DNA from: Bugula neritina
Taxonomy: Eukaryota > Animalia > Bryozoa
NCBI GenBank assembly: GCA_964035545.1
Contig: OZ037769.1
Location: 14,600,633 to 14,664,632 of the forward strand
DNA length: 64,000 bases
Direction: 5' to 3'
Shown here: positions 16,501 through 52,899 of the stretch, one piece after another
How the letters are laid out: each line of letters opens with the position of its first letter
Position numbering within the stretch: the first letter of the stretch is position 1
Translations under genes and position numbers: made by a program
Notes under the pieces: generated by a model
The model's input: the letters and a program-made list of their open reading frames with translations, nothing else
Told to the model about the DNA's origin: nothing
The model's database searches: none

Positions 16501-16893
16501 AGTGCCGGTTAAAAGTTAATTATAATTGGAAATAAGGTGAAATATCAGTCAGAAATTAAAAAGTGTCAACTAAAAAGGTGTATTGTTATTTCTTTTTGGC
16601 TTAATGAAAAAGTTTTTTGAGGAAGAAGTACGAGAAACATCTAGGAGGGGTTCATATCCACCACTGGCGACTACCTGTTTATTGATGAAAAACTATCCAA
16701 TGATAGTACAGTATTATGGTCTTTTGCCTTATAATTGGCTTTGATTTTTTTATGTCTAATTACGAGATACTAAACAGATGCAAAGTATGTTGTGCATAGG
16801 CAGTTTTTTTATGTCTCTAAACAACATTCTAGGAAAATATATACTGCACAAACTTCACATCTGTAAGGTTTTTCTCCAGTGTGTATCCTCATA

Positions 16894-19800
16894 CACAGTT
16901 AGTTTAAGGTCATACTTTTCATTTTCTGGCTCTTTGCCAGGTGCTTTATGTTCTATATGAACAATGTTCCACTGATAGCTCGAACAGGTTGAATGTCACA
17001 GGAACAAAAAAAATATGAAAAGATAAAGAAACTTATGTTCTCCAATATACTTTTTTATTTTTTTCAAAAGCCAATTCATGTTTAAGTTATAGCTTGTTGA
17101 AAAACATATTCCCCCTTCCACATTCTTTTTAATTTATACGCTCCTGACTTGTTATTGCGTCTCAATATGCCTTGTATTTGAGTGCTTGTTAGTCTCGCTT
17201 CACTAACTTTGCCTATACTTCACAAGTGCCAGTGCTGCTGGCTCAAAAGCTAAATGTTATAAACTGTCAGCTAAAACCCAATCTTGTATTCCTAGGTTGG
17301 TTGGCCTAAATAAAACAATAGTCAAATCATGATTTCATGTTTTAAAAATTTACTCTATTCTAACCTGCTGCCTAGCTATAGTTCTATTTTTGATTTATAA
17401 TTACAGCATTTGTGATACATTTTTTTGGCAACCATGTGATTTATAAAATGCAGTAATGGTACTTACAATATTATATTATTACCATTATAATATATTATAT
17501 AGTATTATGTGTGTTTTTATTATACTGCATAATATCTATTTTATTATTGTTGTTGTGCAAACAAGTGCAATTAACCTAGTTTTCAAAATGTACCTCTAAA
17601 TTATCAGAATATCAGTTCAGATATTTTCATGCTTTGTTAGGTAAACCTAAAAAAAGAGGCTGTATTCCCAAAGTAAAGGGTGTTGAACTATGAACTATAT
17701 TAGATTAGCCACTCTGCTACCAAGTGCATCAGTAAAATATTATATGAATAGCTCTGATGCTTTGTCTCCAGTGGCTGGCTGCGATATGATAACTTGGCCA
17801 ACTTCCAAGAGTTTAAAATTGGTGCAATTATTCAAGAGGTTACATACTGCACAGAGCTAGCAGTGATAGTAACCTTGCTATTGGCAGTACTTATTACAAC
17901 TGCCAGCATATAAGCTGCATTGTAGAATGCAGTTGGGGTAGGCTAGTAAAACCAAATTCTGCTCTCTAATATACCTTAGACACAATGCAGCAACATAATT
18001 GTTCGTTTCAAATTACATTGCCACCCTTACACGAGCTGTGGGCTTCATAAAGATTCATATGATTAGAGATTTATGCTATAGGCTAGCTATGATGAAAATA
18101 ACACACCATTGTCAAAGTTAACTTCAAGTATGTTGTTTTCCAGAAACTCAGTAATGTCCATTTATCTCTCGCATACAAATACTTATGCAATAGCATACAG
18201 TTTAAGTTTTATTTTAGAGCACACCTGCAAACTCTACAATAAGAGCTTGCTTTAACAGTCTATTTCAGACCTGTTTTTGTAGCTAGTAATACGCAAGCTA
18301 CTTATTTTTAAACTTTTGGGTTATTTGTTCAAAACAATTAGCTTTGCTAGTAACCCGAGACTATCGCAACAGTTGACTGCTATCAACATGAATTGACAGC
18401 CTAATAATAGACGATGTAAATTTGGTACATTTAGTACCTTGTACCAACTCTAGAATACTCACCACTATAACTTATATAAACTTCTGCAAGTTCAAATGCA
18501 AAATGCATACTTTTAGAAAATAGCTGTGCAACTTTTATTACATGCATTATTTTATTTCATATCTTAAACTTATGAACCATGAGTTCATTTTTCAAAATGT
18601 TTAAATTAAGTGCTCAAAAAATGCAATTAAAATTTTTATTCTTGCACAAATACCCTGGTGCAGTTTGACCACAACCCCAGCTGTTTTGACAAACACATTT
18701 AATGGTTTTTTTTATTGACATAGTGGTGAATGAGCTGGTTGTTTTTGGCAGTTGGGTAGACTTGAAGCTTGGCAGCTTTTAAACAATTCTGATTGGCAGA
18801 ATTTTACACGATAAGTTGATGTTTGTATCTGATTGGCCTAATAATGCATTTGCATTTGAAAATGTAGAGTTTTATTTAAGCTATAATGGTGATATTTTAG
18901 AGTTGGCACACACCCCTTTTGGGTTGAGTTTTATAGTCTGTTCCTGCTGTAGTCATCTACAACAACAGTGTATAGGGAAATTATTAGTATTACGAAATCT
19001 GTTTTGGCTTACTTTGCTATGCCAGTATTCTGACTTAGTTTGTAATCAACTATGTTGGCAGTTAAAACTGAGGGTGATTTCATCAAAGGTGGACATTGCT
19101 GAGGCCTTAGAACATCAAATCAACCAGTGCTGTTACTTGGTTGTATTGTAAAGCAGTAGTGAGAGCATAGCACACTATCACAGTCACTGAGCTGCAATGA
19201 CAGTGGCTACACCAAACTCGTCAGTTCTATTATATTATCTTATGTAAGGCACGTCAAAACAATATAGACCCACATGCAAGGCACTACATGCTAATACTCA
19301 TTTTTATACAAAATTTCTACATTATCTATTGCTAATAGCTGTGCATTTAAATCCAATGCAGATGAATATGTGACAGAGTAAAAAGCTACTGTTTTACAAA
19401 TTTAAAATAAAATAATAGTGCGGGTACACAAGCAAATAATTTATAGTTAGCGTAGGCTAATGCATTTGTAATGTGCATGTTAAACAACTTTTTTATAATT
19501 TATTACATTAGACTATGAGAATGTATTTAGTAGTATGTATTGATTTAAAACTAAATCATGAAATGATTATCATTATTGCAACCTCTGTGCTTGGTAGACA
19601 GGATAGAGAGGGGTGGTGTGACTGCTGTAACTGTGCTACTGCTCTACATACTAACAGAGACTAGGCTAGTGTTTTGACGTGCCTTACATACTGTCATTGC
19701 AGCTCAGTGACTGTGATAGTGTGCTATGCTCTCACTACTGCTTTACAATACAACCAAGTAACAGCACTGGTTGATTTGATGTTCTAAGGCCTCAGCAATG

Positions 19801-21209
19801 TCTACCTTTGATGAAATCACCCTCAGTTTTAACTGCCAACATAGTTGATTATAACAAAACTAAGTCAGAATACTGGCATAGCAAAGTAAGCCAAAACAGA
19901 TTTCGTAATACTAATAATTTCCCTATACACTGTTGTTGTAGATGACTGCAGCAGGAACAGACTATAAAACTCAACCCAAAAGGGGTGTGTGCCAACTCTA
20001 AAATATCACCATTATAGCTTAAATAAAACTCTACATTTTCAAATGCAAATGCATTATTAGGCCAATCAGATACAAACATCAACTTATCGTGTAAAATTCT
20101 GCCAATCAGAATTGTTTAAAAGCTGCCAAGCTTCAAGTCTACCCAACTGCCAAAAACAACCAGCTCATTCACCACTATGTCAATAAAAAAACCATTAAAT
20201 GTGTTTGCCAAAACAGCTGGGGTTGTGGTCAAACTGCACCAGGGTATTTGTGCAAGAATAAAAATTTTAATTGCATTTTTTGAGCACTTAATTTAAACAT
20301 TTTGAAAAATGAACTCATGGTTCATAAATTTAAGATATGAAATAAAATAATGCATGTAATAAAAGTTGCACAGCTATTTTCTAAAAGTATGCATTTTGCA
20401 TTTGAACTTGCAGAAGTTTATATAAGTTATAGTGGTGAGTATTCTAGAGTTGGTACAAGGTACTAAATGTACCAAATTTACATCGTCTATTAGAGAAACT
20501 GAAAGTACACCTGCTGCGCTATAGACAGACATTTACTGACAAGACTGTAAAGTGAAGTGATTTAGCTGAAATTAACTTTGCCAAACAAACAAAGAATTAT
20601 GTTGTGCTGAGGCATTTTCAATATATTATTGTAACATAGTGAGATGATTCAGCTGAGTGCTAAAGTAAAACAGGGAGCATTATATTGGCAGAAATCCAAT
20701 AGATTGCCAATTTGTGCGAGAGGGTACTATATGTTATTGTGATAGCGCAGAGCGGCAAACTACTAGGAATGTTATAATTAGTCACAGGAGCGTAGTTAGA
20801 ACCACCATATGAAGAATTTAGAAAATTGCAGTGAAACTTGCAAAATGGTGTATGTTTTTACCAAATTGTGAAGAGCATAAACAGAATTTCAAAAAACAAA
20901 GAAAGTATATTAGAGAAAACATATCAAGGAATGTCAAGTTTAACATTTAAACTTTGTAAAATGAATCCCCTGTGCTACAGCAGTGGAACATGGAGGGTGT
21001 AAAATTTTACTTATTATGCAACAACTTTCTCAGAAAATTTTTTATTGAAAAATTAAAAAAGTATATGAAAGAGGAATGCAAGAGCTATCTTTTCATGTAA
21101 AATTTATTAATGTGAGACAAAAACTGTTCGAGCTATCTCCTGGAAACTGTTTATATATAACATAAAGCAGTGCCTGAATCTGGAAAGTAATGACCTTAAA
21201 CCAACTGTG
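16894..21209. mobile_element. Non-autonomous TIR DNA transposon with CACAG termini and TA target duplication (EnSpm/CACTA-like or Tc1/mariner-like)
   Basis: Left end TA|CACAGTTAGTTTAAGGTCAT, right end ATGACCTTAAACCAACTGTG|TA. Imperfect TIR of about 110 bp (gctttatgtt...gatagctcgaacag). The empty site is defined by the ZNF reading frame. Confidence 0.9.
18409..20488. mobile_element. Nested foldback-type DNA transposon with about 850-bp near-identical TIRs and AT target duplication (ISL2EU/PHIS-like)
   Basis: 18409-19261 is the reverse complement of 19670-20488, apart from one 36-bp indel and a few substitutions. Ends are AT|AGACGATG...CATCGTCT|AT. The spacer is about 410 bp with no recognisable transposase. 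Confidence 0.92.
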
Positions 21210-21779
21210 TATGAATAGATAAATTACTTCTCTGCGTATATGCTTTGTCACACTTTTCACATTTGTATAACTTTTCTGAGTTGTGTTTTTTTACGGGGAG
21301 AGTTAATTCATTCCTGTCTTTGAAAATGGTGTTACATATTTGAAATTCATAAAAGTTTTCTTCATGGTTTATGTTCATGTATTTAGGTAACTCCTGATAT
21401 TGTGAAACCTGTTTACAATGATTTCTGTATGCGTCATTTTCTGCTAGCTCCATGCATGTTCTAAAGTGTTCTTCACACTTTGCACACCTTTTGGGCTCCT
21501 TACTATTTTCTTTTGTGTCAAGGCCAAGCAACGAATAAATGAAGGCTTCCCCACACTCACTACACCTTTTAAGATGTTTATTACTGTGCATTGTAGGATA
21601 GTTATTTGAAACTGGCGTCTGTGAACAACCTTCTTCTTTTGTATCATCAGTTTCAACTTTAAACTCTAAAAGAAGAGATTCCAGATTCTCACCTTTCTTT
21701 CTATTCTCAGATGCTAAGTCTTGCTCTGGAATATTAATAATAAACATTTACAATCTGCTGAGATAAAATATAAAAGAGA

Positions 21780-21900
21780 GCAGCAGTGGTATATAGGGGT
21801 TAAAATGTTTGCTTTGTAAACACAAAGTTAAGGGTTTGAACCCAGACAAAAGCCATTAGTGATGTTAGGAAGAGCATCCAGTCATAATTGCTTTCATTTA
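21780..21900 (+). mobile_element. tRNA-derived SINE in the ZNF1 intron
   Basis: A-box TGGTATATAGGGG, B-box-like GGTTTGAACCC, core gtgatgttaggaagagcatccagtcataa. Paralogous copies at about 25702, 28752, 30592, 38550 (head deleted), 42233, 48036, 52339 and 59408. Confidence 0.7.
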
Positions 21901-23093
21901 AATAAGCTCTTAGCCCAATTCATTAAAAACTCTTTTCTATCAGGGATCTCTTACAGAGACAGTGACTATAAACTTGTGTGAGTTTAAAATATATATATTC
22001 TTCTATAGAAGTTGTGGTATGTATAGTAGTTCAAGCAATGCATGGGGAGATAAAGACAAAAATACATGCAAAACCCTGAATAAGAAGCAAACTGGGAAAT
22101 TTACTAAAACAAAATGCCTAAATAGAATTTTAAACTGAATCAAATTTTTTTTTAAAAGGCAATAGAAGACAACTCTTTACTCACCACTGATGGACATATC
22201 TTGGTATTTTAGTATTTCTACTCAATCCTGATAAAATAATAAAATACTCTAAATCATATCATGTCCAATAAACAAAAGTACTAAATTAAAAATGATAAAG
22301 CATTAGCAAAAATTGGAAATCTAAAAGCAGAAAATTATAGCTTAAAAAGCCATAGAGTTGGTACTATATATAGCAAAATGTAAAACACAAAATACAAAAA
22401 TTAAAGACTAGCTATTTGGTTGCTGAAAGCTTTGAGGATGAGAAAGTATTGGGGAAGCAGTAATTTATAGACATATCTTATAAATTATTACTTGAAATTT
22501 AATCCTAATGTTTGTGCAACTGGGCTGATATACATATTATATTATATATACCTATCTTACCATCACCAAGAACTTATAGATTAAATAGATATAATACATT
22601 ATTCAAAGTAGCAATTTGGGCCTTAATAAAGCATTTAAAAAACCTACATCGAAAAATAAAGGCAAACCTTTATATTATTTTTCATCTTATTTCAACACTT
22701 AAAAAATAATATTTAATATAACTTGACATTAAAAAAGATTTTTGATCAGTAGCAGATGTTTATGAAGCTTACCCTGTGAGTTCACCGCAAGCATCAACTA
22801 TGATCTCAAGATACTCTTGAAAATAAATAACTTTTAGTGCCTATTTAATATATCTTATAGTTTATTACAATATATTGGTATAGAATAAGTAAAATCTAGT
22901 TTTAAATCAATCATGATATTGAATTGCACTTGATTATAAAAATGTGAGAAAAACAAATTTATTATAAAGCAATCCAAAAGTATAGAACCTAATTTTGTAT
23001 ATAATTATATGTGTATGAGTTGTCAAATATATTTTTTTTATAATATATAATAAAAATTATCAAAAAAAATTGCATCAAACCATAAAATCGTGC

Positions 23094-23113
23094 AGGTCAA
23101 AAGTCAAAGGTCA
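23094..23113 (+). promoter_or_regulatory. Tandem nuclear-receptor DR1 elements
   Basis: AGGTCA-A-AAGTCA-A-AGGTCA, about 0.9 kb upstream of the ZNF1 start exon. Confidence 0.45.
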
Positions 23114-24232
23114 AAAGAATGTAAATTCTGCATGTAAAAGAAAAATAATAATTTCCTAATAAATTAAAAATAAATAATAAAATAATAAATGATAAAATAA
23201 TAAATAAAAAAATAGATTTAACTGAGCAAAAAAGCTTAGCTAGATTATAACAATAAACTGTAATAATTTAATTGAATGCTGTATTTTACTATGTTAAGAA
23301 AGTCATGAGTCTATGTACGATTTGATGCTAGCCATTATTGTTTTACTATGCAACCACTTTAATATACTTTTCATTGGACAATTGGCACATATATTATACT
23401 ATGAGCAGCGAATTTAGAATGCATGCTAGTATAGATTCATCATCAAAATTTGAATTGCAAATTTGCTCTATGCTTTTCTGAGATATTTTTATCGGGGTTA
23501 GCTTATATAAAAATTATTTACTCAAAAAAGACTTAAAATATTATAAGCTTTCTTGTAGCATACTCCACAGAAATTTAAAACTGTTCATTGTGCTCTAAAT
23601 TTTAGCTCGATAATGATATTTTGCTCCATATTCTTGAATATTCATTTAATCTGTTTTTTTAATGTTTTTTCAAAGCCTATCAAATGCACTTCTTTACATA
23701 TATGTGTCATTTAACTTATAGTGCTTTAATTTATACATTTATATTAACATTTTTAACATAATAGGGTAAACTGTTTCTGTTAAATCATCTATAAAGACTT
23801 GAAAACTACCATGAAAGCTGTTATTTCTAAAATTATAAATATATTATGTAATGATGATTCTTGCATTATTACTTCACTTTATAGTACACTTTGAATACAA
23901 AACATCTTTGCACAAAATTATATAGATTTAATTCATTAAGACATTAAAACAATACTATGTGCAGTTTATTTATTATATATAAGAATGATGAAAAGTATAC
24001 AATCACTTAAGAATTCAGATGAATAACTATAAACTGTCTGATTCAGTATTGATAATACATTTCTAAAAATAGTTTTACATACTTTAATCAAACATCTTAA
24101 AACAATAGTCTAAATATTAAAGTGACTTTACATTAATGGGCTAAAAGTTATTCCAAATACATTAAACTACTCCGCTTGTCTCATTAAATGGTTGGTGATA
24201 TAGATTTAACTCTGCTAAATGTTTTAAAATAT

Positions 24233-24653
24233 GGGTCATTTTACTTAGTTTAGTACACACTGGAAATTTCCAGTTTTTAGCTATTTTTTACAATTTAGCT
24301 GCTAATGAACAAGGGTTTTTGCCCAAAAGTAGTTAAATGTCAATGAACACACATAAATAATCGAGGTTCTTTTTAATTTTGATTGATTTTCCATGTTTTT
24401 TCCTAATTATTCAACTACTTTTGATTGCAGGCCGTTACGAAAAAACCATAACGGTCTGCAATCAAAAGTAGCTAAATAATTAGGAAAAAACATGGAAAAT
24501 CAATCAAAATTAAAAAGAACCTAGATTATTTATGTGTGTTCATTGACATTTAACTACTTTTGGGCAAAAACCCTTGTTCATTAGCAGCTAAATTGTGAAA
24601 AATAGCTAAAAACTGGAAACTTCCGGTGTGTACTAAGTTAAGTAAAATGACCC
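24233..24653. mobile_element. Young palindromic MITE (421 bp), probable 4-bp ATAT target duplication, GGG termini (Sola-like)
   Basis: Near-perfect hairpin GGGTCATTTTACTTA...TAAGTAAAATGACCC centred near 24443. Absent from the paralogous ZNF 3' flanks (about 34830 and 46740), which give the empty site. Confidence 0.92.
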
Positions 24654-24850
24654 ATATATTTTGAGTTTTAATATGGTGTTTTATCTCAATATGCAATTAA
24701 TTATACTCGATTATATCCCTAAACTAAACTATGAACATTTGAATTGTGTTTAAAATTAATCGCGAGCTTACATTTGCATTTTTGATGCTGTGTTTTCATG
24801 CATACAATAGTCTGTCTGCTTTCTCTGAACATCTGGCCACATATTTCACA

Positions 24851-26128
24851 TTATTTTCTATAAGAGTGTACCTTCATGTGATTAGTTAGATTTTGTTTTG
24901 TGGTATAGGTCTTTCCACAACTTTCACATCTGTAAGGTTTCTCTCCACTGTGTATCCTCACATGAACATTTAGATGTCCTTTGTGGCTAAAATTCTGGCC
25001 GCATGTCTCACATCTGTATGGCTCTTCCCCAGTATGAGTTCTCATATGAACAGTTAGTTGTGCTTTTTGTCTAAAAGAATTGCCACAAACTTTACATCTG
25101 AATGGCTTTTCTCCAGTGTGTATTCTCGCATGAACAGATAAACTACTTCTCCGTGTATATGCTTTGTCACACTCTTCACATTTGTATGGCTTTTCCAAGG
25201 TGTGTTTCTTCACAGAGTTAGCTAGTTTGTCCCTGTTTTTGAAAATGGTGTTCCATGTTTGAAATTCATAAAAGTTTTCTCCATGGTTAATGTTCATGTA
25301 TTTAGCTAACTCCTGAGATTGTGAAACCTGTTTGCAATGATTTCTGTATGAGTCATTTTTTTCTAGCTCCATGCATATTCTAAAGCATTCTTCACACTTC
25401 GCACACCTTTTGGTCTCTCTACTATCTTCTTCTGTGTCAAGGCCACACAGCAAATAAACGAAGTCTTCCCCACATTCCCTACATCTTTTAATATGTTTAT
25501 TGTTGTGCATTGTAAGATAGTTTTTTGAAACTGGCGTCTGTGAACTTAACCTTCTTCTTTTGTGTCATCTGCTTCAACTTTAAACTCTAAAAGAGGAGAT
25601 TTCAGATTATCACCTCTCTCTCTATTCTCAGATGCAAAGTCTTGCTCTGGAATATTAATAGGAAACATTTGCAACTTGTTTATATAAAATATATAAAACG
25701 AAGCAGCAGTGATCTAGGGGCTAAAGAGTTTGCTTTGTGAAAACTAAGTCATGGCTTTTAACCCTGACAAAGACTATCGGTAATGTTAAGAAGAGCATCT
25801 GTGGTCATAATTGCTTTGATGCCTCATTTAAAAAGTCTTTAGCCCGTTCTAACAAAAAACCCTTTCCATGATGGGATTCCCACAGGGATAGCGACTATAA
25901 AATTATGTGAGTTTAAAATATATAGAAGTTGTATTTTATAATAGTTTAATAATACTTTAATTAGGCAATGCATGAGCAGAGCAGGAAAAATACATGCAAA
26001 AATCGTGAATCAGAAGCAAACTGTATAATTTACTAAAATAAAATGTCTTTATAGATTTCTAAAATGAAACAAATTGTTTTTTATAAAAAGCAACAGAAGA
26101 CAACTCTTTACTCACCACTGATGGACAT
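24851..26128 (-). pseudogene. ZNF2: four-finger C2H2 gene with a +2 insertion creating an early stop
   Basis: Mini-exon 26128-26116, main exon from 25646. An extra TT at 25546-25547 turns GGT TGT into GGT TAA. The downstream ORF 25510-24851 is still open (C4 module plus 4 fingers). Confidence 0.85.
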
Positions 26129-26632
26129 ATCTTGATATTTTAGTATTTCTACTCAATCCTGATAAGATAATAAAATACTCTAAAACATATCATGTCCAAT
26201 AAACAAAAGTACTAAATTAAAAGTGATAAAGCATTAGCAAACATTGGAAATCTAAAAGTAGAAAATTATAGTTTAAAAAGCCATAGAGTTAATACTATAT
26301 AGCAAAATGTAAAACACAAAATACAAAAAGTAAAGACTAGCTATTTGGTTGCTGAAAGCTTTGAGAATGAGAAAGTATTAGGGAAGCAGTAGTTGATAGA
26401 CTTATCTTATAAACTATTCCTTGAAATTTAATCTCAATGTTTGCTCGACTTGGTGGATATATGTATATATATAATTTATATTTAGGCTACCAGTATCAAA
26501 AACTTGTATAGATTAAATTTATCTTTAAAAAATTAATTTTAAGCTGCAATTTATTATTATAAAATGGTACACACGACATCTAGATATCATACAAAATATC
26601 AAAATAAAATGCATCAAACCATAATGTCATGC

Positions 26633-26652
26633 AAGTTAAAGGTCAAAGGTCA
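26633..26652 (+). promoter_or_regulatory. Tandem DR1 nuclear-receptor elements
   Basis: AAGTTA-A-AGGTCA-A-AGGTCA, containing a perfect DR1, about 0.5 kb upstream of the ZNF2 start exon. Confidence 0.45.
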
Positions 26653-27898
26653 AAAGAATGTATTAAAGTATCTAAAAAAATTTTTTAATTATAAATTTAA
26701 CTCAATCAAAAAAGTCTTATATCCAGTTTATGACAATATTATAGTAATTTAGCTATTATATATGTTGGAGTTTCCGCCGTTGAGTACTCATGTGTCTATG
26801 TGTGCTTTGATGCCAGCCATTATTGTTTTACTATGCAACCACTTTAATAGACCTTTCCTCAGAAAAAAAGATAATTAATACATACTATAAGCAGTAAATA
26901 TAAACTGCTGTTATAGAATCGTTATCAAAATTTGAATATCAAAATTGCTCTATTTGTCTGATTTTGCTCCTAATATTAATTTATCAGGGTTAGCTTAATT
27001 ATAACAATCAGCTACTAAAAAAGCTTTCCTATAGCCCAATCCACAGTATTTTAAAACTGTTCTTCGTGCTATAAGTTTTTCTTGTTTACCTATAATAATA
27101 ATATTTTGCTCTATATTATTGAGCATTATATCTAATTTTTCACTGTTTATTCAAAGCCTATCTAAGGACGCTTTCGAAAGCGCCCTAATTAATTCATCTT
27201 CCCACAAATATATGTAGCATTTTAATATATAGTGTTTTTATACATTTATATTATTTTTTTAAACATATTAGGTAAATATTTTCTGTTAAATCATTCGTAA
27301 AATCTTAAAAACTACCATGATGTCTTTTTTTACTAAAATTGAAGACATTATATAATAGTATTATATGCAATATTATGACACTTTATAGTATAATCTGAAT
27401 ACATAACATCTTTGCACAAAGCCATATAAATTATGCATTAGACATTAAAATAATATCATATGCAGATAATTTATTAAATATAAAAATGATAAAAAGTATA
27501 CAATTACTAATAATACTAATTAAGATATATAACTAGAAACTGTCTAATTCAGTATTCATGATGCATTTCTAAAGATAGTTTTCCATGCCTTAAGATCACT
27601 CGTCTTGAAATATTTGTCTTTTAATTGTGTCAAAGTAATTTTCCGGCTAAAAATTATTCCAAATACATTAAACTACTCTGTTTGTCTCACTAAATGATTG
27701 GTACAACAGATATAACTCTGCTAAAATTTTTTAGCTATGTTTCATGTTTTAATGGTGTTTCATCTAAGTATGCAATTTTATATCATTTATATATAGCTTA
27801 TAAAATTGAAATTTTCGTTTTACATTTGCAATTTTCTTGCCGTGATTTGATATAACAACCTATAAGCTTTCTCTTAATGTCTCGCCATAAATTTTACA

Positions 27899-29173
<1,275 letters not shown>

Positions 29174-29407
29174 CTTGATATTTTAGTATTTTTATACTCA
29201 ACTCTGATAAAATAATAAAATACTCTAAAAAGTATTACGTCTAATAAACAGAAGTACTAAGTTAAAAGTGAGAATGCTTTCTAAAAAAGCTAAATTTGAA
29301 TTGCATTTAAAATTGTTCACAAGCTTACGCATTTGCATTTTACATGCTGTGCTTTTATATAACAGTCTGTATGCTTTCTCTGAATGTCTGCTACAAATTT
29401 CACTTTA

Positions 29408-30919
29408 TTATCTAAAGTGTGTTTTCATGTGGTTAGTTAGATAGTATTTTCTGGTAAAAGTCTTGCTACAAGTTGCACATCTGTATGGCCTTTCTCCAGT
29501 GTGAGTTCTCATGTGAACAGATAAAATATTACTCTGTCGAAAATTCTTATTGCATACTTTGCACCTGTAAGGTTTTTCCCCACTATGTATCCTCATATGA
29601 GTGGTTAAATGTACCTTTTGTTTAAAAGTCTTGCTGCAACTGTCACACCTGTAAGGTTTTTCTCCACTATGAACTTTTATATGCCTTAATAGATCACTTC
29701 TTTGTGTGAAAGTCTTGTCACATAATTTGCAATTGTATGGCTTTTCTCTAGTATGACTTCTTATATAAACAATTAGATTTCCTTTTCCTATAAAAGTTTT
29801 ATCACAATTATCACATTTGTAAGGCCTTTCTCCAGTGTGCACTCTCATATGAACAATTAAAGCCCCTTTGCAGCTAAATGTCTGGCCACATGTTTCACAT
29901 CTGTATGGCTTCTCTTCACTGTGTGTCCTCATATATGAAGAGATAGAGTACTACTTTGTTGAAAAGTCTTATTGCATACTTTGCACCTGTAAGGTCTTTC
30001 TCCAGTGTGTATTCTCATATGAACAGATAAACTACTTCTCCGTGTATATGTTTTGTCACACTTTTCACATTTGTATGGCTTCTTAAAAGTGTGTTTTTGC
30101 AAGGGGTTTATAGTTAGTTCGTCCTTGTTTTCGAAAATGGTGTTCCATGTTTCAAATTCATAAAAGTTTTCTTCATGTTTTATGTTCATATATTCAGGTA
30201 ACTCTTGAGACTGTGAAACCTGTTTGCAATGATTTCTGTATGAGTCATTTTTTTCTAGCTCCATGCATGTTCTGAAGTGTTCTTCACACTTCACACACAT
30301 TTCAGGCTCTCTACTATCTTCTTTTGTGTCAAAGCCAAAAAACGAATAAATGAAGGCTTCCCCACACTCCCTACATATTTTAAAATGTTTATTGCTGTGC
30401 ATACTAGGATAGTCATTTGAAACTGATGTCTGTGAACAACCTTCTTCTTTTGTGTCATCAGCTTCAACTTTGAACTCTAAAAGAGGAGATTCCAGATTCT
30501 CACCTCTCTCTTTATAATTCTCAGATGCAAAGTCTTGCTCTGGAATAATAATAGTAAACATTTACAATTTACTGAGATAAAATATAAATGGAAGCAGCAG
30601 TGGTTTAGAGGTTAAAGCATTTGCTTTGTGAACACAAAATCATGGGTTCAAACCCATGATTTTAGAAAGAGCATCCAGTCTTGCTCTGAAATATTGTAAT
30701 ATCAAAAATGTACCTATATATGTGTTGCTTTATTAAAAACTCAAGGCCTATAAGTCTATATAGTAGTTCAAGAAAACCCCATTACAGGAAGATGAAGACA
30801 AATGCTTGCAAAATTTGTGAGCTAGAAAAACAAAATATTCTAATAGATTTATAAATAGAATCAAATTGTTTTTATAAAAAGCATCAGAAGACAACTTTTT
30901 ACTCACCACTGATAGACAT
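29408..30919 (-). pseudogene. ZNF4: eight-finger C2H2 gene with a +2 frameshift in finger 2
   Basis: Mini-exon 30919-30907, main exon from 30539. CATATATG at about 29930-29937 splits the ORF into 30561-29929 and 29932-29408, which overlap at ATGA. Confidence 0.88.
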
Positions 30920-31049: not shown

Positions 31050-34000
31050 AGGAGTTATAGCTAAAAAGCCATATGGAATTGTTACTAGCAAATGTTAAAA
31101 CCCGTAATGGAAAGATAAAGACTTGCTTATATTTAGTTGCTAAAAGCTTTGAGGATGAGAAGGTATTGGGAAGCAGCAATTGATAGACATATTTTATAAA
31201 TTATTCCTTGAAATTTGGTGAAGGTAAAGCCTGTCAGTCAAAGTCTTCAAACAGATTCCAGTATATTCTTATATTCTCACTGTACAGGACTCCATAAGCA
31301 ATGACATGCAGCATCAGTAGCTCAAGGATTATAGTCAGTAGACGTATTAAAAGCATATGATGCTATATAAACAATGAATACTCATTTATGAAATATTTTC
31401 TCGTTCTTTTTATTTCACATTATAGATACTGGGAGCTGAACAAAAACATTTTCTTTTCTTCCTTGTTTCCAGTGTAAGTTGAATTACTTGCATTTTTTCA
31501 AATATAATATAGTTAACTATATTAACAAAACAATTTGTTTCAAAATTTTTTTTTGATATATATAATCAGTATCAGAATTTAAAAAAATATTTTTAGTGCA
31601 ATCATAACAAGCATATTACCATACTTTGAAACTTTCATTTTTGTTGTTTCATGTTTATGTTCAGTGTACAAGCTATGTTTTAGATTAGCAGAGCCTATTA
31701 TGGTTAAAATTAAATTAGATATGATGAAAAGATGCAAAACCTGCTATAATATGTATAATTAAAGTGAATTTTATTTAAAAAAACAAGTGGTCTTATTAAG
31801 ATCAACACTTTTAAATTGACAGAAGTAATTATTGCCTTAATGCATATACTATAACATTACAGATTTGGTAGGGGAGGGGGGGGGTTTGTTTTCTTTTATA
31901 TTCAGCTTCAACATAAATTCCTATAACTATTCATAATTATTAAAATTCTTTCATACAATATACTATGATTATTTAGCAAACTTTAGGTATTAATTTATGC
32001 TAACATTGTATGTATTAATTGTCAGTATTTAAGTTATTTAAAGAATCTTCTCACAAAATAATGACATCACTATTAAATATTTGAAGCCACTGTTTGGTCA
32101 CAAATCTCTCTGCGGGATAAGAAATCAGACATGAATCTTACAGACAGATAACTCAGAGTTGGTTCACTTTCTGCTGAGTTTGTTTCTATACTCATGAGTA
32201 AATCCACATGTAGATGGTATATATAATATGTTTTAACTTCATTATAGATGAAGGCTCGCACTTAATTTACATTTGCACTGTATTTGGTCGTACATGGATC
32301 TTGAGTGAATGAAATGAATTTTTATCTTCATTAGTTTTTAACTCATGTTTAAATATCCTGATTAGATAAAATTATTTTTTCATCAGCATGTTTAAAATCA
32401 GCTTTGCATTAAAATTTACTGGTAATTTTACTACAAGAAAATATTTGAATTTTTACTTATACAGATTTTAGCAAGAGTTGCTGTAACATCTTTCTCTGTG
32501 CAAGACAAACTGACACATAACCCAGTGATTTATCTTGATTTACATGTTTAAATGACTAGACTATGAATTGTGTCTTATTTTTCTACTTCTCCGTCATGAG
32601 TGTAGCTTCTGGTAAGTGATGGTTTTATATAAACTTCATGTAAACAAGATAACTGTAATTATTATTTTAGTTTACTAATATAATAATATATAGTCTACTT
32701 GTATATGCAGCATGGTCTAGTACAACTATATATATACAATATACTGTATACTATTCTTTTTGCTGACTAATGTTACTGCAGTTTTCAACTTTTATCTTGT
32801 TTATTAGTCTTTTAAAATAGCTAAATAGTATTATTGTATTTGTTCTTGGCAGCACACATTTAATTACTTTTGATGAAAAATGGCAATACTTATAGTTAAT
32901 TTTATCTGCCTCAGCTACTTGCTAGTGAAAAATTCTTCTGAATGTTAACTCAACAAAAAAAATAATTTCTTTTTATAACCTAACTTTCTTACTATGTAAC
33001 AAAATCAGTGTGATTATCATTATTTATACTGTGCAAATGTTTTTAAACTTCACATCTATAAAGATCATGTTGAAAGAAACTACAACAACCAGTATATGGA
33101 ATTGCAAGTTTTTCTTTAGTTTTGAAACTATATTATAGAAAACTAATTTTAAACATAATTAATTTTTGCTGTGTACTTTATAGGTTTAGGAAGAAAACAC
33201 TGCAATATATTTTTATAATAATAAAAATTAAGCCAGATTTTAGTCTAAAAACTATTATGTATATAGAAATTATAGAATTCAATAGTAGATTTACTTAACT
33301 AAAATATTCAATTATGTAAACAATCATGTAAACAAAAATTAATGACATCATAATTATATGAATATAAATTTAAAATTAATATAATACTATAAATAAATGC
33401 TTGTAATATTTGTTATCCTTGCGTTACCAAAAATTAACATATTTTGGGGTTAATATTGATTTTGATGACTGAATTTTTTGCAGGCATTCATTGTACCAGC
33501 TGCTGATGTTGATATCGATCGATTTTTGAAGAATGTCAGCGGAAACTTTCCACAATCTGATTGGCTGAAACAACATCATGGGGTATCCTGTTTAAAAACT
33601 ATAAGAAACATCTTGCAAGACGCTCAGTAACAATTTCAATCCTGTTACAGCTGCTATAAAAACACTTCATTACAGGAACACCAAGTTTGTGTAATGAAAT
33701 AAGCTGAAAGAGTTACATAACAATATTAAATAACAAGTGTATATTCTGCGGTGGTGAATGCCAGTATAGAAATGGTCTGTCTAAAAGTAGCCAAGATCTT
33801 TTTGGCTGAGAAAAGTTTATTGCTAAAGAGAATATCTTATAGACTGCATACCCTAAGACAGCGACAGTTAAACCAGCTACAGCAGCTATTCCAACTTTCT
33901 TCATAGTGCTGAGATTTTGCATGTTATTAACTAAACTGTATATTTCTATCAACTCATTTTTGTGGGAAGACTCCAGACTGGTGTATCTCCTCTGGCAGAG

Positions 34001-34250
34001 TAGTGTATATATATATACCTTTTAGTCATATATCTTTTTTGGCCAGCAATTACCGGTCTACCCTCTTCCCACAATCTCCAATGCAGTTGCCTTCTATTTG
34101 AGACCCGCTCTGTATACACATTCACAGCCTAATTACCATTTATTTAATATAGGCGTGTAAAAAATATTCAAAATAGTATTCAATGCTAAATGCTATTTAC
34201 TGCCTAATATTTAATATGAAAGTTGATGAATATTTTATGCATGCCAATAA
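31050..34250 (-). pseudogene. Decayed unknown gene(s), copy 1, co-duplicated with the ZNF genes
   Basis: Protein-like broken frames: MKKVGIAAVAGLTVAVLGYAVYK (hydrophobic anchor), PMMLFQPIRLWKVSADILQK, CIGDCGKRVDR..TLPEEIHQSGVFPQK. Four paralogous copies in the window. Confidence 0.5.
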
Positions 34251-35031
34251 GTGAACAATTAGACCTCCTTTCTGTCTAAAAATTGCATTATTCATTTGTT
34301 ATAAAAATTTACTTCATTTGTGTCTCACAGTTATAACAGAATTTGTAATTTATTCAATATGCATGTAAACTAAAAATGAAAAACCACCTTTTTGACTAAA
34401 TAAATTCTAATTTTTCATCTTTCAAATATGAATCTATTTGGTTAGAAAAATATATTCTATAGCATATATAGCATATAGATAGTATATATTATGCTACATA
34501 ACATTTTTGCACAAAGTTATATAGATTGAATGCATTAAGACGTAAAAACAATATGTGCAATTAATTTATTAAATATATATGAATGATAAAAAATACACAA
34601 TTACTAATAATGACACTTAAGATGTCAGAAGAATAACTATCAACTGTCTGATTCAGTATATTTATAATTCATTTCTAAAAATAGTTTTCCATACTTTAAT
34701 CAAACCTCCTAAAAATTGTCTAAATATTAAAGTAACTTTACATCAATGGGCTAAAATTTATTCCAAATACATTAAACTACTCGGTTTGTCTCACTAAATG
34801 GTTGGTGATATAGAATTAACTTTGCTAAATGTTTTTAATTATATTTTATGTTTTAATGGTGTTTTATCTTAATATGCAATTAATTATATTTGATTATATA
34901 CTAAAACTAAACTATTAACATTTGAATTGTGTTTAAAATTATTCACAAGTTTACATTTGCATTTTCCATGCTATGTGTTTTCATACAATAGTCCGTCTGC
35001 TTTCTCTGAACATCTGGCCACATATTTCACA

Positions 35032-38884
<3,853 letters not shown>

Positions 38885-40970
38885 CTTGATATTTTAGTAT
38901 TTCTACTCAATCCTGATAAAATAATAAAATACTCTAAAAGATATCATGGCCAATAAACAGAAGTACTAAATTAAAAGTGAAAATGCTTTAGAAAAACTTG
39001 GAAATATTAAAATATAGGAAATTGTAGCTTAAAAAGCCATGGAACTGGTACAAGCAAAATTAAAAATCAAAATACACAACATAAAAACCAGCTATTTGGT
39101 TGCTGAAAGCTTTGAGGATAAGAAAATATTAGAAAAGCAGCAACTGATAGACATATCTTATAAATTATTGCTTGAAAATTTGGTGAAGGTAAAGCCTCTC
39201 AGTCAAAGTCTTATAAATTATTCTTTGAAATTTATTGCTAATGTTTGTGCAACTTGCATGGGTGGATATATATATAAGTATATATATATACCTATCTCAA
39301 CATCACCAAAAAACTATTATAGAAGAAATCTCTCTATATTATTTATTAATAAACCCTTTAAAAATCCTAGATAAATAGAACAATAATGGCAAACATTTAT
39401 ATTTTTTCAACCTTGAGTTGCTTTAAATTTAAAAATGACTTCTAATATTATAACTCCACGCCATAAAATACTTTTTGTAGGCAGATGTCTATAAAGCTTA
39501 CCCAGCTGTGAGTTCACCTCAAACATCAACTAAATTCTAAGAATACTCTTGTGAATAGATAACTTATGGTGCCTATTTAATATATCTTACAGTCTATTAT
39601 AATCTATTATTAAAATGAGTAAAAGTCAAGTTCTAAAACAATCATGATGTTAAATATCAACTGACTGTAAAAATGGGTCTACGTGAATTTCATAAAACAG
39701 CCAACAAGTGGAACACTATTTTGTATATATAATTATATATATCAGTTATCAAATATAAATTTTTTTGTGTGGTAAGACTATAAATACAAGTGTTAGATAT
39801 ATAAGTTTTCAACTAAAAATATTAATTTAAAATCATATTGACCATTTAGTATTTATTTATTTTATTTCAATATATGTTATGTGTGAGAGTAACAGTTTAG
39901 TTACTGTTTTATATATAGTTCCATACTAAAGACCTGGCCTCATAATTGTGAGAATGACACGAAATTCATGTGATGATTTTAGTGAGTTATCTTCTCGTTG
40001 TGACAATATATGCTTTGCTCCAGATATTTTTTCAGGGTTAACCTAAATAAAAATCAACTAATACAAAGGACTTCAAATATATTAGTTTCCTTATTACCTT
40101 TTCTCCACAGAATTTTAAAACTGCTCATAAGCATTTATGCTTTAAATTTTACTCGTATATATAATAGTGTTTTGCTTGATATTCTTAAACAATTAACCAG
40201 CTTTTACAACATTTCTTCAAAACCTTTCTATTGCACCTCCCTCCATGGAGCATTTTACTAGTGCTAATTTATACCTTTATATATTAGCCTTTTAAACATA
40301 TATTAGGATAAATCTCTTCTGATAAATCATTCCTAAAATTTTAAAAATTACCATGCATGAGGCTTTTGTTACTAAAATTTGAGACATTATGTAATGGTAT
40401 TTCTACATTATTATGCCACTTAATTGTACAACCTGAATACATAACATCTTTTCACAAACTCATATAAATTGTGTATTAGATATTAAAATATATGAACATA
40501 ATTTATTATATATAAGAATAATCAAAATTATACAATTACTAATAATAAAACTTACAATACTAAATGAATAACTGAAAACTCTTTGTTTCCTCGTTAATGA
40601 TACATTTATAAAAACAGTTTTCCATGCACTGACCAAAGCAATAATTAGACCATTACCATTGACCACAAACATATTAAAACAATAATCTAAATGTTGATGT
40701 TAAAAGTTATTCCAAATACATTAAACTAATTAGTTTGTCTCACTAATTGGTTGGTAAAACAGATGTAGTTTTGCTAAATTTTGTGGATCATATTTCATGG
40801 TTTAATGGTGTTTCTTCTCTCCCCTCTCCTATGTAATGTTGTATATGATTATAGTTGAATTAGAATTGTGTCCTAAAGTTTTCACAAGTTTGCATTTGCA
40901 TTTTCCATGCTATACTTTCAGATAACAGTATATGTCTGCTTTCTCTGAAAGTCTGGCCACATATTTCACA

Positions 40971-42650
40971 TTATTCTCTAGAGTGTAATTTCATGTGGTT
41001 AGTTAGATTTTGGTTTGTGATAAAAGTCTTGCTACAAGTTGCACATCTGTATGGCTTTTCTCCAGTATGAGTTCTCATATGCACAATTAGATGTCCTTTG
41101 TGGCTAAAATTCTTCCCACATGTTTCACATCTGTAAGGTTTTTCTCCACTGTGTATCCTCATATGAACCAATAGATTGCTACTTTGTATGAAAGTTTTGT
41201 CACATAATTTGCATTTGTGAGGCTTTTCTCCAGTGTGAGTTTTTATGTGAAGAGTTAGGTGGGCTTTTCGCTTAAAAGTATTGCTACAAAATTCACATCT
41301 GTAAGGCTTTGCTCCACTGTGTATCCTCATATGAACAATTAAAACTCCTTTTCGTTTAAAATTCTTCCCACATGTCTCACATCTGTAAGGTTTTTCTTCA
41401 CTGTGTATTCTCATATGAAGAGATAAACTACTTCTCCGTGTATATGCTTTGTCACACTTTTCACATTTGTGTGGTTTTTCTTTAGTATGAGTTCTCATAT
41501 GGACAGTTAGATCTCCTTTTCGTATAAAAGTTTTATCACAACTTTCACATTTGTAAGGTCTTTCTCCAGTGTGTATTCTCATATGAACAACTAGAGCTCC
41601 TTTGTGGGTAAAAGACTGCCCACATGTTTCACACCTGCACAGGTTATCTCCACTATGTATTCTCATATGAATAGATAAATTACTTTTTCGTGTATATGCT
41701 TTGTCACACTTTTCACATTTGTATGACTTTTCCAAGGTATGTTTTATCACAGGGTGAGTTGGTTTATTCCTGTTTTTCAAAAAGGTGTTCCATGTTTCAA
41801 ATTCATAAAAGTTTTTTTCATGGTTTATGTTCATATATTTAGGTAACTGTTGAGATTCTAAAACCTGTTTGCAATGATTTCTGTATGAGTCATTCTTTTC
41901 TAGCACCATGCATATTCTTAAGTGTTCTTCACACTTCACACACCTTATGAGCTCTTTACTATCTCCTTGTGCGTCAAGGCCAAATGACAAATAAAAGAAG
42001 TTGTCCCCACATTCACTGCATCTTTTAAGAGGTTTATTGCTGTGCGATGTAGCATAGTTATATGAAACTGGCGTCTGTGAACAACCTTCTTCTTTTGTGG
42101 CATCTGCTTCAACTTTAAACTTTAAAAGAGGAAATTCCAGATTCTCATCTCTGTCATTATTCTCAAATGCTAAGTCTTGCTCTAGATCTTCAATGTTAAA
42201 CATTCAAAATTCACTTAGATAAAATATATAATTGAGCAGCTGTGGTCTAGGAGTTAAGTTGTAGTGTTTGCTTTGTGAAAACGAATTTATGGCTTTGAAC
42301 CCTGACAAAGGCCATTGGTGATGTTAGAAAAAGCATCTAGTCATAATTGCTATTACTGCAGGTCTTATTTAAAATATTTTTTAGCCCATTCTAACAAAGA
42401 GCTTTTTCATCATGTAGGATTCTCACAAGGATATCGACTATTAAATTTCTTGAGTTTAAAATATAGAAGTTGAGCTATATATAGTAGTTCAAGCAATGCA
42501 TGAGGAGATAAAAACAAATACATGAAAAATTGGTAAGTAAAATACAAACTGTGAAAGTTACTAAAACAACATATCTAAATAGATTTGTCCTTATAACTTG
42601 TTTTATAAACAATAATGGAATGCAATTCTTTACTCACCACTGATAGACAT
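40971..42650 (-). CDS. ZNF6: intact C2H2 zinc-finger protein, 9 fingers (join 42650-42638, 42181-40971)
   Basis: Open frame MSISEQDLAFENND...FKVE...CSEC-x22-CVKC...9 fingers...HSRE*, with canonical GT/AG splice sites. Confidence 0.9.
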
Positions 42651-42799
42651 CTTGAAATTTTAGTATTTCTATACTCAACTAAACAAAATAATAAAATACT
42701 CTAGAAAATATTACGTCTAATAAACAGAAGTACTAAATTAAAAGTTCTAAAGTTTTAGAAAATCTCGTAAATCTCCAAATTCGGAATAATAGCTTGAAA

Positions 42800-45700
42800 A
42801 GCTATAAAATTATTACTAGCAAAATTTAAAACTCTTGATGAAAATATAAAGACTTGCTATTTGGTTGCTGAAAGCTTTGAGGACTATAGTAGCAGGGCAA
42901 AGATTACAGCTAGTTATAAATCTATTAAAAACATTTGATAATATATAAACACTGAATGCTCATTCATGAAAGCTTCTTTTGATCTTTTTATTTACCATAT
43001 TATAGAAAATTGTAATTAAACAACAGATATTTTTTTATTTCATGTTTCCAGTGTAAGTTGCATTACTTGTTTTTTTTTCCAGATATAAAATAGTTAAATA
43101 TTAACAAACCAATTCTCTTCAAAATTTTTCCCCGATATGGTCAGTATCAGATTTAAAAAATATTTCTAATGCAAACATAACAATTAGCATACCATAGTTT
43201 GCAGTTTTGATTTTTGCTGTTTCAAGTCTACAATGTCTAAAATACAAGCATTATTTTAAATCAGTATAAACCACATCATTATTCAAATTAAGTTAGATCT
43301 GATGGAAAGATGCAAAAACTGCCAATTGTTTAATAAAATTAAACTTTATTTGAAAACATAAATGATCTCTATAAAACCCAAGACTCATCAACTGGCTGCA
43401 GTAATGATTGCCTCAATGCATGCATATATACTACAACATGATATATAGCTTTTTAGACACAACTTAAAGTTTTCAGTTATTTTCAGCTTCAATTACTTAA
43501 ATTTTGATGGCTATTCAGGATTATTAAAATTATTTTGTATAATATATTATGATTATTTAGCATACTTTAAGTATCTATTTATGCTGACTTTGTTTTTAAT
43601 TATTGTCAGCATTTAAGATATTTAAATTATCTTCTCACAAAATAATGACATCACTATTAAATATTTGAAGCCACTGTTTAGTGACAAACCTTTCTGCAAG
43701 ATAAGAAAACAGACATGATTTTTGCAGACAGTTAACTCAGAGTTGGTTCACTTTCTGCTGAGTTTGTTTCTATACTCGTAAGTAAATTCAATGTATGTAG
43801 ATGGTATAATATAATATGTTTTAACATATAATATACTTAATTTCCACTTGTATACTGTATTTGGTCGTACATCAATCCTAAATGAATGAAATGAATTTTC
43901 AGCTTAATTAGTTTTTAATTTATGTTTAAGTATTCTGATTAGATAAAATTATCTTTCCATCAGCATGTTTAAAATTAGTTTTGCATTGAAATTTACTCGT
44001 AATTTTACTGCAAGAAAATATTTGAATTCTTTACCTATACAGATTTTATAGCAAGTGTTGCTGTAGCATCTTTCTCCATGCAAGAGAATTGATGTCACAT
44101 CACCCAGAGATTCATTTTGATTTACATGGTTGAATGATACAGTATGAGTTGTGTCTCCTTTCTCGTGCTTCGATCTCAGTCATGAGTGTAGCTTCTGGTA
44201 AGTGAGGGTTTTGTACAAACTTCAAGTAAACAAGATGACTGTAATTATTACTTTAGTTTAATATTATAATAGTCTGCTTGTATATGCAACATGGTCTAGT
44301 ACAACTATATATATATATATATACTATATACTATTGCTTCTGCTGACCAATTTTACTGTAGTTTTCAACTTTTACTTGTTCGTTAGTATTTAAAATACCT
44401 ATAAATAATACTAATGCATTTATTCCTGACATATTCAATTACTTTAGAGGAAAAATTATGGTAAACTAATTTACTCTATTTGCCTCAACTACTTGCTATA
44501 AGTGAAACATTCTTCTGAATGCTAACTCAACAAAAAATATAATTTTTTTTTAATCTAACTTTTTTACTTACATGTAATGAAATCAGTATGATTATCATTA
44601 TTTACCATGCAAATGTTTTTTAAGCTTCACATCTATAAGATCATGTTAAAAGAAACTATAACAACCAGTTTGTTGAATTGAAAGTTTTCCTTAAGCCTTG
44701 GAACTATATCGAAAAATACTTTTAAACATATAATAATGCTAATATATTATAGGTTTAGGTTTAGGAAAAAAACACTGCAATCCTTGAACAATTAACAAGT
44801 AAGCCATAATTCAGTCGATGAAATATAATTATAAATATAGAAACCATAAAATTCAATAGCAAATATTTTACTAAACTAAAACATTCAACTATGGAAACAA
44901 TGACTACACAAAAATTAATGACATCATAATTATATGAACTAAATTAAATTTGAAATCATTTATCGAAATAAAGGTTTGTAATTTTTTCCCTGCCTTAGCA
45001 AAAACTAGCATTTGATGTTTAATATTGATTTTAATGACTGAATATTTTACAGGCAGCCATTATAGTCAGAAAAACTACTAATGTTGATATCAAATTATCT
45101 TTGAAGAATGTCAACAGAAACTATCCAAAATCTGATTGACCAAAACAGCATCATGGGGTTTCCTGTTTATAAACTATAAGTGACATCTTGTAAGACATGC
45201 AGTAACAGTTTCAATCCTGTTACAGCTGCTATAAAGACAATTAATTAATTACAGGAACACCAAGTTTGTGTAATGAAACAAACTAAAAGAGTTATATGAC
45301 ATTAAATAACAAGTGTATATTCTGCGGTGGTGAATGCCAGTAGAAATGGTCTGTCTAAAAGTAGCCAAGATCTTATTGGCTGAGAAAAGTTTATTGCTAA
45401 AGAGAGTATCTTATAGACTGCATACCCTAAGACAGTGACAGGTAAACCAGCTGCAGCAGCTATCCCAACTTTCTTCGTAGTGCTGAAATTTTGCATGTTA
45501 TTAACTAAACTGAGCTGTGCAAACATGCGCAAATGCATGAGTTTTATCAAACAAGTAATACAAAGAATTTCTACATATCATATAGGTATGCTATAATTAC
45601 CTCTCTTTTGCTTGAATCAATGAATTGAATCAGTAGGTAATCTTTATTGGTCATTTTTTCAATTAATTATAATAACACTATTACTGTTATTTTCATAATC

Positions 45701-46155
45701 TACTATATAGTGGCTAAAAGGAGAATATTTATATATTGATATTTTAATTATGAATATAATTTTCTATAGTATAATATAAAAGATATTTATTTTTATTGAT
45801 TTGCAAGAAAAATCTGTATTTAATTTTATTTGAGGAAATTTATCAGCATGTTTCTATCAACTCATTTTTGTGGGAAGACTCCAGACTGGTGTATCTCTTC
45901 TGGCAGAGTAGTGAATATATATACCTTTTAGTCATACATCTTGTCAACCAGCAATTACCGGTCTACCCTCTTCCCACAATCTGCAATGCAGTTACCGTCT
46001 ATTTAAGGCCTGCTCTGTATACACATTCACAGCCTAATTACCATTTATTTAATATAGACATGTATAAAATATTCAAAATAGTATTCAATGCTAAATGCTA
46101 TTTACTGCCTAATATTTAATATGAAAGTTGATAAATATTTTATGCATGCCAATAA
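42800..46155 (-). pseudogene. Decayed unknown gene(s), copy 2
   Basis: Homologous to 31050-34250; includes ORF 45302-45550 (KKVGIAAAAGLPVTVLGYAVYK). Confidence 0.5.
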
Positions 46156-52751: not shown

Positions 52752-52899
52752 CTTGAAATTTTAGTATTTCTATACTCAACTAAATAAAATAATAAAATAC
52801 TCTAGAAAATATTACGTCTAATAAACAGAAGTACTAAATTAAAAGTTCTAAAGTTTAAGAAAATCTCTTAAATCTCAAAATTGGGAATAATAGCTTAAA

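Follow-up and report, generated by a model that had tools for sequence, protein, structure and literature searches.

How do a recent transposon insertion and a set of two-base frameshifts come to lie at the same kind of codon pair in neighbouring zinc-finger genes? The question is raised by a 64-kb window (the whole stretch of DNA analysed, positions 14600633-14664632 of contig 5) in the 216-Mb assembly of the bryozoan Bugula neritina, whose G+C content is about 30%. The window holds about ten C2H2 zinc-finger (ZNF) genes in a tandem cluster on the minus strand. In ZNF1, a non-coding transposon with CACAG...CTGTG termini interrupts the CATATG that encodes a His-Met pair in finger 1. ZNF3 and ZNF4, as well as a related pseudogene on contig 4, carry two additional bases (+TA) at His-Met pairs of their own. 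The best single reading of these +TA frameshifts, and one that we hold in even balance, is that they are the exit scars of hairpin-forming transposons that duplicate 2 bp at their targets, left by a general rather than a targeted process.

The insertion itself can be followed base by base. The element occupies 16894-21209 on the minus strand and is a non-autonomous cut-and-paste transposon of 4.3 kb, with imperfect inverted repeats of about 30 bp and no open reading frame. Along the minus strand, ZNF1 reads TCT ATT CA-TA, and CACAGTTGGTTTAAGGTCAT... begins at 21209; the far end of the element, ...ATGACCTTAAACTAACTGTG, stops at 16894 and is followed by TA-TG AGG ATA CAC ACT GGA GAA AAA CCT. The target duplication is TA on both sides, with the upstream copy at 21210-21211 (the last bases of CA-TA) and the downstream copy at 16892-16893 (followed by TG AGG ATA CAC), which gives the layout CA-TA[element]TA-TG within the finger 1 His-Met codon pair. 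Deleting the element and one TA brings back an unbroken stretch of 12 residues. By open reading frames and alignment, the 5' part of the gene (21210-21747, minus strand) comprises the N-terminal region and finger 1 through its first zinc-binding His. The 3' remnant (16847-16893, minus strand) is only 15 residues long before unrelated DNA begins, and ZNF1 is thus additionally truncated, 47 bases past the element.

Relative to its family, the window copy is 97-98% identical to copies of 2.55 kb (2-3% diverged) and has one +TA against the family consensus. Its greater length includes a nested foldback of 2.09 kb (18405-20492), whose arms of about 800 bp are 99-100% complementary; this stands in place of 327 bp of internal sequence in the family copies, with TA at either side. 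Within the window, two copies of the terminal 20-mer are found where 0.01 are expected. The element is a young insertion of the cut-and-paste type that duplicated the TA within CATATG, just as the sequence-only reading had described this junction. We rejected two other histories for it. Insertion into an already frameshifted CATATATG, the motif with the added TA, does not agree with the flanks, CATA and TATG, which together make up CATATG with a single 2-bp duplication. The sequence of ZNF3 is exactly what ZNF1 would read without the element, but the two are not the same locus, because the genes share 86% identity and the element has diverged by only 2-3%; a single insertion inherited by both genes and later lost from ZNF3 was rejected on the same comparison, given the element's 97-98% identity to its sisters.

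The +TA lesions are equally plain in the reading frames. In ZNF3, CATATATG lies at 28180-28187 on the minus strand, where +TA at the finger 1 His-Met gives His-Ile-stop, the stop overlapping the Met codon (ATATGA). One open reading frame (28179-28721) ends in ...SLSIHI and a stop, and the next spans 27931-28182. In ZNF4, CATATATG at 29930-29937 (minus strand) marks a +2 change at the finger 2 His-Met, the sole lesion seen in the gene, with flanking open reading frames of 210 and 174 amino acids; the first (29929-30561) ends in ...STLSLHI and a stop, and the second (29408-29932) starts with MRTHSEEKPY. In both genes the paired frames have four bases in common at CATATATG. When nine window ZNF genes are aligned with the pseudogene of contig 4 (ten sequences in all), the element in ZNF1 and the +TA of ZNF3 share one column of finger 1; the ZNF4 event belongs to finger 2. 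These placements agree with those given earlier from the sequence alone. The third case, on contig 4 (18596500-18600500), is a dispersed and decayed pseudogene of the same ZNF family with +TA at its finger 3 His-Met. It is further damaged by stops, by +1, -33 and +21 changes and by a C-to-TTG change just before CATATAG.

The ZNF4 lesion allows a second description. The closest paralogous finger, about 95% identical, reads CATATAAGG, and the lesion could be written as +TG in a His-Ile-Arg finger; local rates suggest that +TA plus one substitution is the likelier history. We regard the three +TA lesions as independent, because their flanks differ and the ZNF3 and ZNF4 genes are only 86-87% identical in pairwise comparison. 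Spread of one +TA between fingers by gene conversion is unlikely, as ZNF3, ZNF4 and the copy on contig 4 show base differences no more than 10-15 bp away on either side. Cleavage at a cryptic end-like CACACTGG in the finger linker was also considered, but at a distance of 9-10 bp this sequence does not account for the +TA.

Across the genome, the pattern CATNNATGAGRAYNCAY was found in 15 places, compared with 17 for its control. Six of the 15 are CATATATG: three lie in finger arrays (ZNF3, ZNF4 and the contig 4 pseudogene) and three in unrelated DNA. Within the window the 8-mer CATATATG is not enriched (3 found, 2.7 expected). A stricter finger-context pattern, also applied genome-wide, found no +1, -1 or -2 changes at finger His-Met sites, and the only +1 or +2 changes there in finger context are the three +TA lesions. 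Their placement is non-random: of all TA dinucleotides in the coding sequence of the ZNF genes, only 5% are His-Met TAs (P about 0.003 that two coding +TA both fall at such sites).

Could these lesions be errors of assembly or consensus at short AT runs? Long-read consensus can err in dinucleotide runs. Nonetheless, we consider an artefact highly improbable. The same local context occurs without +TA in up to eight paralogs, and the +TA events sit at single TAs and in runs of two units, places in which consensus seldom goes wrong in this way. ZNF3, moreover, is a true pseudogene with an independent lesion besides its +TA, an 8-bp duplication.

We next consider what the element family does at its targets. 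With up to two mismatches allowed, the terminal 20-mer has about 475 matches genome-wide, as opposed to 2 for a reversed control, and typical pairs lie 2.55 kb apart; the family has about 240 copies. CACAG...CTGTG stands on both ends of the window copy and of five extracted full copies, and the same 20-mer begins 30 further single ends. Each of 30 sampled ends comes from the 2.55-kb form, which is non-coding, all 35 examined copies are non-coding, and one full copy scanned for open reading frames has none of note. Read by eye, about 17 of 19 end pairs have matching 2-bp flanks, which include TT, TA, AC, TC, AA, TG, AT, CA and GA. Among 95 unique ends the flank is TA in 29 (about 30%), compared with a TA dinucleotide frequency of 11%, and AT in 7%. 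The family therefore duplicates 2 bp of any sequence, with a roughly threefold liking for TA, and its earlier description as a TA-duplicating element was too narrow.

For the same reason (TA at 29 of 95 ends, a duplication that is not TA-specific), we rejected a Tc1/mariner identity. The family resembles Tc1/mariner and other strict TA duplicators, including the fungal ESTA and PHISTA, in its 2-bp duplication and in the TA of this particular insertion, but TA flanks only about 30% of its copies. Tc1/mariner elements keep 2-3 element bases between two TAs when they exit, and a genome-wide search of finger His-Met sites found no scars of this type. The termini point instead to the CMCT clade (EnSpm/CACTA, Mirage, Chapaev, Transib and relatives), with which the family shares 5'-CA...TG-3' ends, terminal inverted repeats, a 2-bp duplication and many non-autonomous copies. 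Elements of this clade have CA...TG ends and 2-5 bp duplications, with transposases that share motifs with RAG1, and the Mirage type within it makes 2-bp duplications (PMC12730594). The clade's transposases are DDE enzymes with C(2)C and H(3-4)H motifs. The present family differs in that the 35 non-coding copies contain no transposase, and its duplication, which favours TA about threefold, is not sequence-specific. Assigned by its end features, it is a putative member of the CMCT clade.

Does this family aim at the finger CATATG? The finger His-Met pattern CATATGAGRAYNCAY matches 217 sites, versus 11 in a control, which leaves about 206 finger sites; among the 100 of the 217 matches that were listed, most lie in the window's cluster. 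Since 240 random insertions would place one copy at such a site with a chance of only about 7e-4, the coincidence in ZNF1 is real, yet the family's insertion logo does not explain it. CATA precedes 3 of the 95 unique ends, the window copy included, and the junction CTGTG-TATGAGRAYNCAY occurs once in the 216-Mb genome, in this window. A search of finger His-Met sites found no imperfect scars either. There is no evidence that the family aims at this motif, and the sequence-only reading's proposal that it does so repeatedly was not borne out.

That proposal belongs to a wider idea, in which the CACAG family prefers the finger CATATG, entered ZNF3 and ZNF4, and left both target copies behind as a counter-move against a defence family. 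We judge this unlikely. The chance of about 7e-4 does speak for it, as does the fact that all three coding +TA lesions fall at His-Met sites. ZNF1, ZNF3 and ZNF4 also lie within 13 kb, which fits local hopping, and TCATATGA is an 8-bp palindrome, a shape of target probably often preferred by dimeric transposases. These points are set against the 3 CATA ends in 95, the single such junction in the genome and a share of TA of just 30% among the family's duplications; a preference of about 1000-fold would be needed, with no mechanism in sight. The supposed defence function fares no better. Pfam finds only C2H2 families in the ZNF proteins, whose residues 1-160 at the N-terminus have no match and no KRAB; nor do the proteins contain SCAN, BTB or any other named effector domain. 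An atlas search returned weak generic ZNF matches only, and nothing ties these genes to transposon control or silencing. The cluster is comparable to tetrapod KRAB zinc-finger repressors in being a tandem array of fast-evolving C2H2 genes with many pseudogenes. It differs from them in lacking KRAB, SCAN and BTB, in its 160 N-terminal residues without a Pfam family and in its invertebrate host. An arms race between the element and a ZNF "defence" is unsupported whichever origin the +TA lesions had.

The neighbouring non-coding DNA offers a neutral yardstick for such lesions, namely a duplicated two-gene block (33940-46158 against 45848-56235) with 9667 aligned bases and 501 mismatches. Between its two copies lie 15 one-base, 18 two-base and 10 three-base indels, with fewer of larger sizes, so that the two-base class is the largest. 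Fourteen of the 18 two-base indels are TA or AT adjoining TA or AT, and TA-to-TATA is the commonest small indel. When they are polarised by a third and further paralogs, at least ten prove to be derived gains of TA or AT, and none is a loss of TA. Strictly filtered singleton indels lean the same way, with 17 insertions and 3 deletions in nine- and seven-way alignments and 15 and 1 in four-way blocks. The singleton sets add five more +TA or +AT events and contain no 2-bp deletions. An insertion-dominated spectrum in which two-base events are the commonest is unusual for an animal genome, and it is seen both in the block (33940-56235) and in the ZNF flanks.

At this point the leading alternative has to be weighed. 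The +TA of ZNF3 and ZNF4 could be TA duplications made in replication or repair, by slippage or at the birth of a proto-microsatellite in a genome of 70% A+T. CATATG would then be hit because each 84-bp finger unit has just this one conserved run of ATAT, and the element in ZNF1 would be coincidental, helped by the family's threefold liking for TA. We regard this as a close rival, somewhat less probable than exit scars. TA-type two-base insertions are indeed common in the nearby neutral DNA, where TA is added beside TA as when a microsatellite is born by tandem duplication of 2-4 bases. The neutral rate, about 1.3% of TAs per 5% divergence, would yield about three hits at some 206 finger His-Met sites, and three are seen. 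The earlier suggestion that the +TA count be compared with background thus gives no excess in number. The background so measured is nevertheless insertion-only and strikes lone TAs, neither of which is expected of slippage.

The insertion-only polarity (at least ten to none) is the first difficulty for slippage, as no contractions were seen. Four of the +TA events lie at lone TAs, where there is nothing to slip, whereas lone ATs were almost never struck, and not once among the pairwise events. The rate per run is 0.45% for runs of 2 bases, 1.4% for 3 and 0.8% for 4, from small numbers, and ATAT runs are hit at 1 in 120, no more often than lone TAs. The same DNA also carries non-tandem palindromic insertions (TC-GA-TC, TG-CA and TT-AA), which are not slippage products. 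Two controls for slippage within the ZNF genes point the same way but are underpowered: the (AC)3 of the same linker has no +2 or -2 change in 62 sites, and a Pro-Tyr site has no +2 change. Finally, slippage leaves the element at the very same site to chance, about 5% for a TA-duplicating insertion in ZNF coding sequence.

An exit scar that keeps both copies of the target duplication is, by comparison, a viable origin for +TA, as had been proposed from the sequence alone, and one mildly favoured by the local indel spectrum. Insertion-only polarity, hits at lone TAs, a roughly flat rate over runs of 2-5 bases and an excess of two-base over one-base events would all be consistent with it, as would three hits at the finger His-Met sites, about the number expected at the neutral rate. 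Excision by Transib, RAG and hAT proceeds through hairpins on the flanks. A non-coding copy of the CACAG...CTGTG transposon recently hit ZNF1, duplicating the TA of the finger 1 CATATG. Under the exit-scar reading, the +TA of ZNF3, ZNF4 and the contig 4 pseudogene would be cases of a wider regional class of short insertions, mostly TA-to-TATA. This class would be made by 2-bp-duplicating transposons of the EnSpm, Mirage, Chapaev or Transib kind as they cut themselves out. The element would depart whole; each flank would retain its duplicated pair, probably sealed in a hairpin as in Transib, RAG and hAT; and the ends would then be rejoined. A self-complementary target such as TA would give TATA whichever way the hairpins open, and other targets would give mixed small insertions with palindromic junctions. 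By this chemistry, the self-complementarity of TA could explain why TA scars are uniform and other scars mixed. Possible sources are at hand, as the 64-kb window contains three resident 2-bp-duplicating insertions with TA or AT duplications.

The clearest candidate for a non-TA scar is a derived, non-coding +4 insertion at 44170-44175 (plus strand), where TC-GA-TC takes the place of the single TC found in three paralogs. This pattern can be read as one copy of the duplication, two palindromic bases and a second copy, as expected for a hairpin-opened scar. Also in this DNA are a TG-CA palindromic insertion in the two-gene block and a derived TTGCA inserted after TGCAAC, which makes a palindrome; the TT-AA of ZNF2 is likewise scar-like. 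Junction palindromes among 18 non-TA insertions exceed those of random inserts, with P values from 0.0025 to 0.1 depending on the statistic. Palindrome-creating derived insertions, the TTGCA among them, are found at 39254-39258, at 42357-42361 and near 49454 and 56087, three separate events each making CTGCAG. The closest known counterparts are the footprints of hAT Ac/Ds and Transib and the coding joints of V(D)J recombination with their P nucleotides. Common to these and the present events are the doubling of the target pair, a polarity of insertions only and palindromic bases at the junctions. They differ in that the scars proposed here come from paralog comparison and that the duplication is 2 bp instead of 8 or 5 bp.

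Several observations weigh against exit scars, and some of them favour slippage. The +TA rate climbs in runs of 5 or more bases, as slippage predicts. The family's duplications are TA or AT in 37%, whereas the tandem two-base insertions are nearly all TA (all but one TA or AT), with few non-TA +2 events. Imperfect scars are absent from the finger His-Met sites: the filler pattern TCATA-N(1-8)-TATGAGRAYNCAY has 4 matches genome-wide against 2 for a control, and none lies on the ZNF-cluster contigs. The palindrome signal is weak and varies with the statistic. No site was seen both occupied and scarred, the assembly holds no second haplotype, and excision of this family is thus something that we infer. 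Copies of the family elsewhere hold a single +TA in 51 kb, or one per 251 unique substitutions, compared with 14 per 501 in the ZNF cluster; the difference (P 0.03) is not significant for singletons only, and we claim no regional enrichment. The 10-bp satellite, in which 9 of the 95 family ends lie, has no 12-bp unit among 520. This null result counts against any uniform +TA process, although concerted evolution may hide scars there.

A last point on this side is that both coding +TA lesions of the window, that of contig 4 and the resident element all sit at His-Met TAs, 5% of the coding TAs. Neither uniform scarring nor slippage predicts such clustering. One possibility is that some element has a real liking for the 8-bp palindrome TCATATGA. 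Alternatively, selection may act as a filter, in that ATATGA leaves the finger array an immediate start codon and could make the allele less harmful. A stronger version of the exit-scar reading would take in the first of these ideas. In it, CMCT excision through flank hairpins would be the main source of small insertions here, producing TA-to-TATA at about 1% of TAs per 5% divergence, and the CATATG within TCATATGA would be a favoured landing site, so that ZNF genes are repeatedly disabled and a two-base scar is left behind. We consider this stronger version doubtful.

Should the exit-scar reading hold, the influence of cut-and-paste transposons on the small indels of this genome would reach well past the copies still visible. 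An added TA in a gene would then document an earlier transposon visit, transposon traffic could be measured from a single assembly, and the window would preserve a natural record of donor-site repair by relatives of the RAG recombinase. Under slippage, the same lesions would represent ordinary pseudogene decay in an A+T-rich genome, together with one coincidental insertion.

The cluster carries further lesions. Counting these, all four frameshifts in the window's ZNF genes are insertions, and three of the four are +2. ZNF2 has +AA in its N-terminal region (25546-25547, minus strand, by alignment), reading GGTT-AA-GTTC; GGTTGTTC stands there in eight window paralogs and in the pseudogene of contig 4. 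The two added bases are the reverse complement of the TT just before them. The second lesion of ZNF3 is an exact 8-bp tandem duplication at 27975-27990 (minus strand), with CCATATAG present twice and the last finger shifted out of frame. Its length is that of a hAT or P-type target duplication, and it may, by analogy, be a further exit scar.

A second transposon (35172-37602) interrupts ZNF5 between CEKCGKN and F-KRKGHL. This element is 2.43 kb long, with 590-bp inverted repeats that are 98% complementary, ends AGAGGCTTTTCAC...GTGAAAAGCCCCT and an AT target duplication. The counterpart of its insertion point is the empty site GAAGAATTTTAAA in the sister gene at 46939-47943. ZNF5 (37993-38524) and ZNF7 (47467-48004), which are 96.6% identical, have both lost the ATG of the other paralogs, with AAAGTTTTG in place of AAATGTTT. 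Their true start may lie in an upstream exon, because a conserved ...TTATCTCAG just upstream of the lost ATG resembles a splice acceptor. ZNF9 (58145-58171) stops at a TAA where its paralogs have AAA (GGA GAG TAA CCT), with finger-like sequence beyond, and this looks like a premature stop.

In ZNF1, the 45 bases that follow the element (16847-16891) match ZNF3 (28137-28181) at 44 positions; the next-best finger differs at 4, and upstream the two genes are 86% identical. The finger 1/2 junction may have a common origin in the two genes or have undergone gene conversion. As for the wider distribution of the CACAG family, the roughly 9 of 95 ends that lie in satellite DNA occur in several registers of a 10/20-bp repeat (CAGTATGTTG / CAGTATATTT) on contig 1, and contig 2 contains, near 18.0-18.7 Mb, three tandem units of 6.3 kb, each with a copy of the family.

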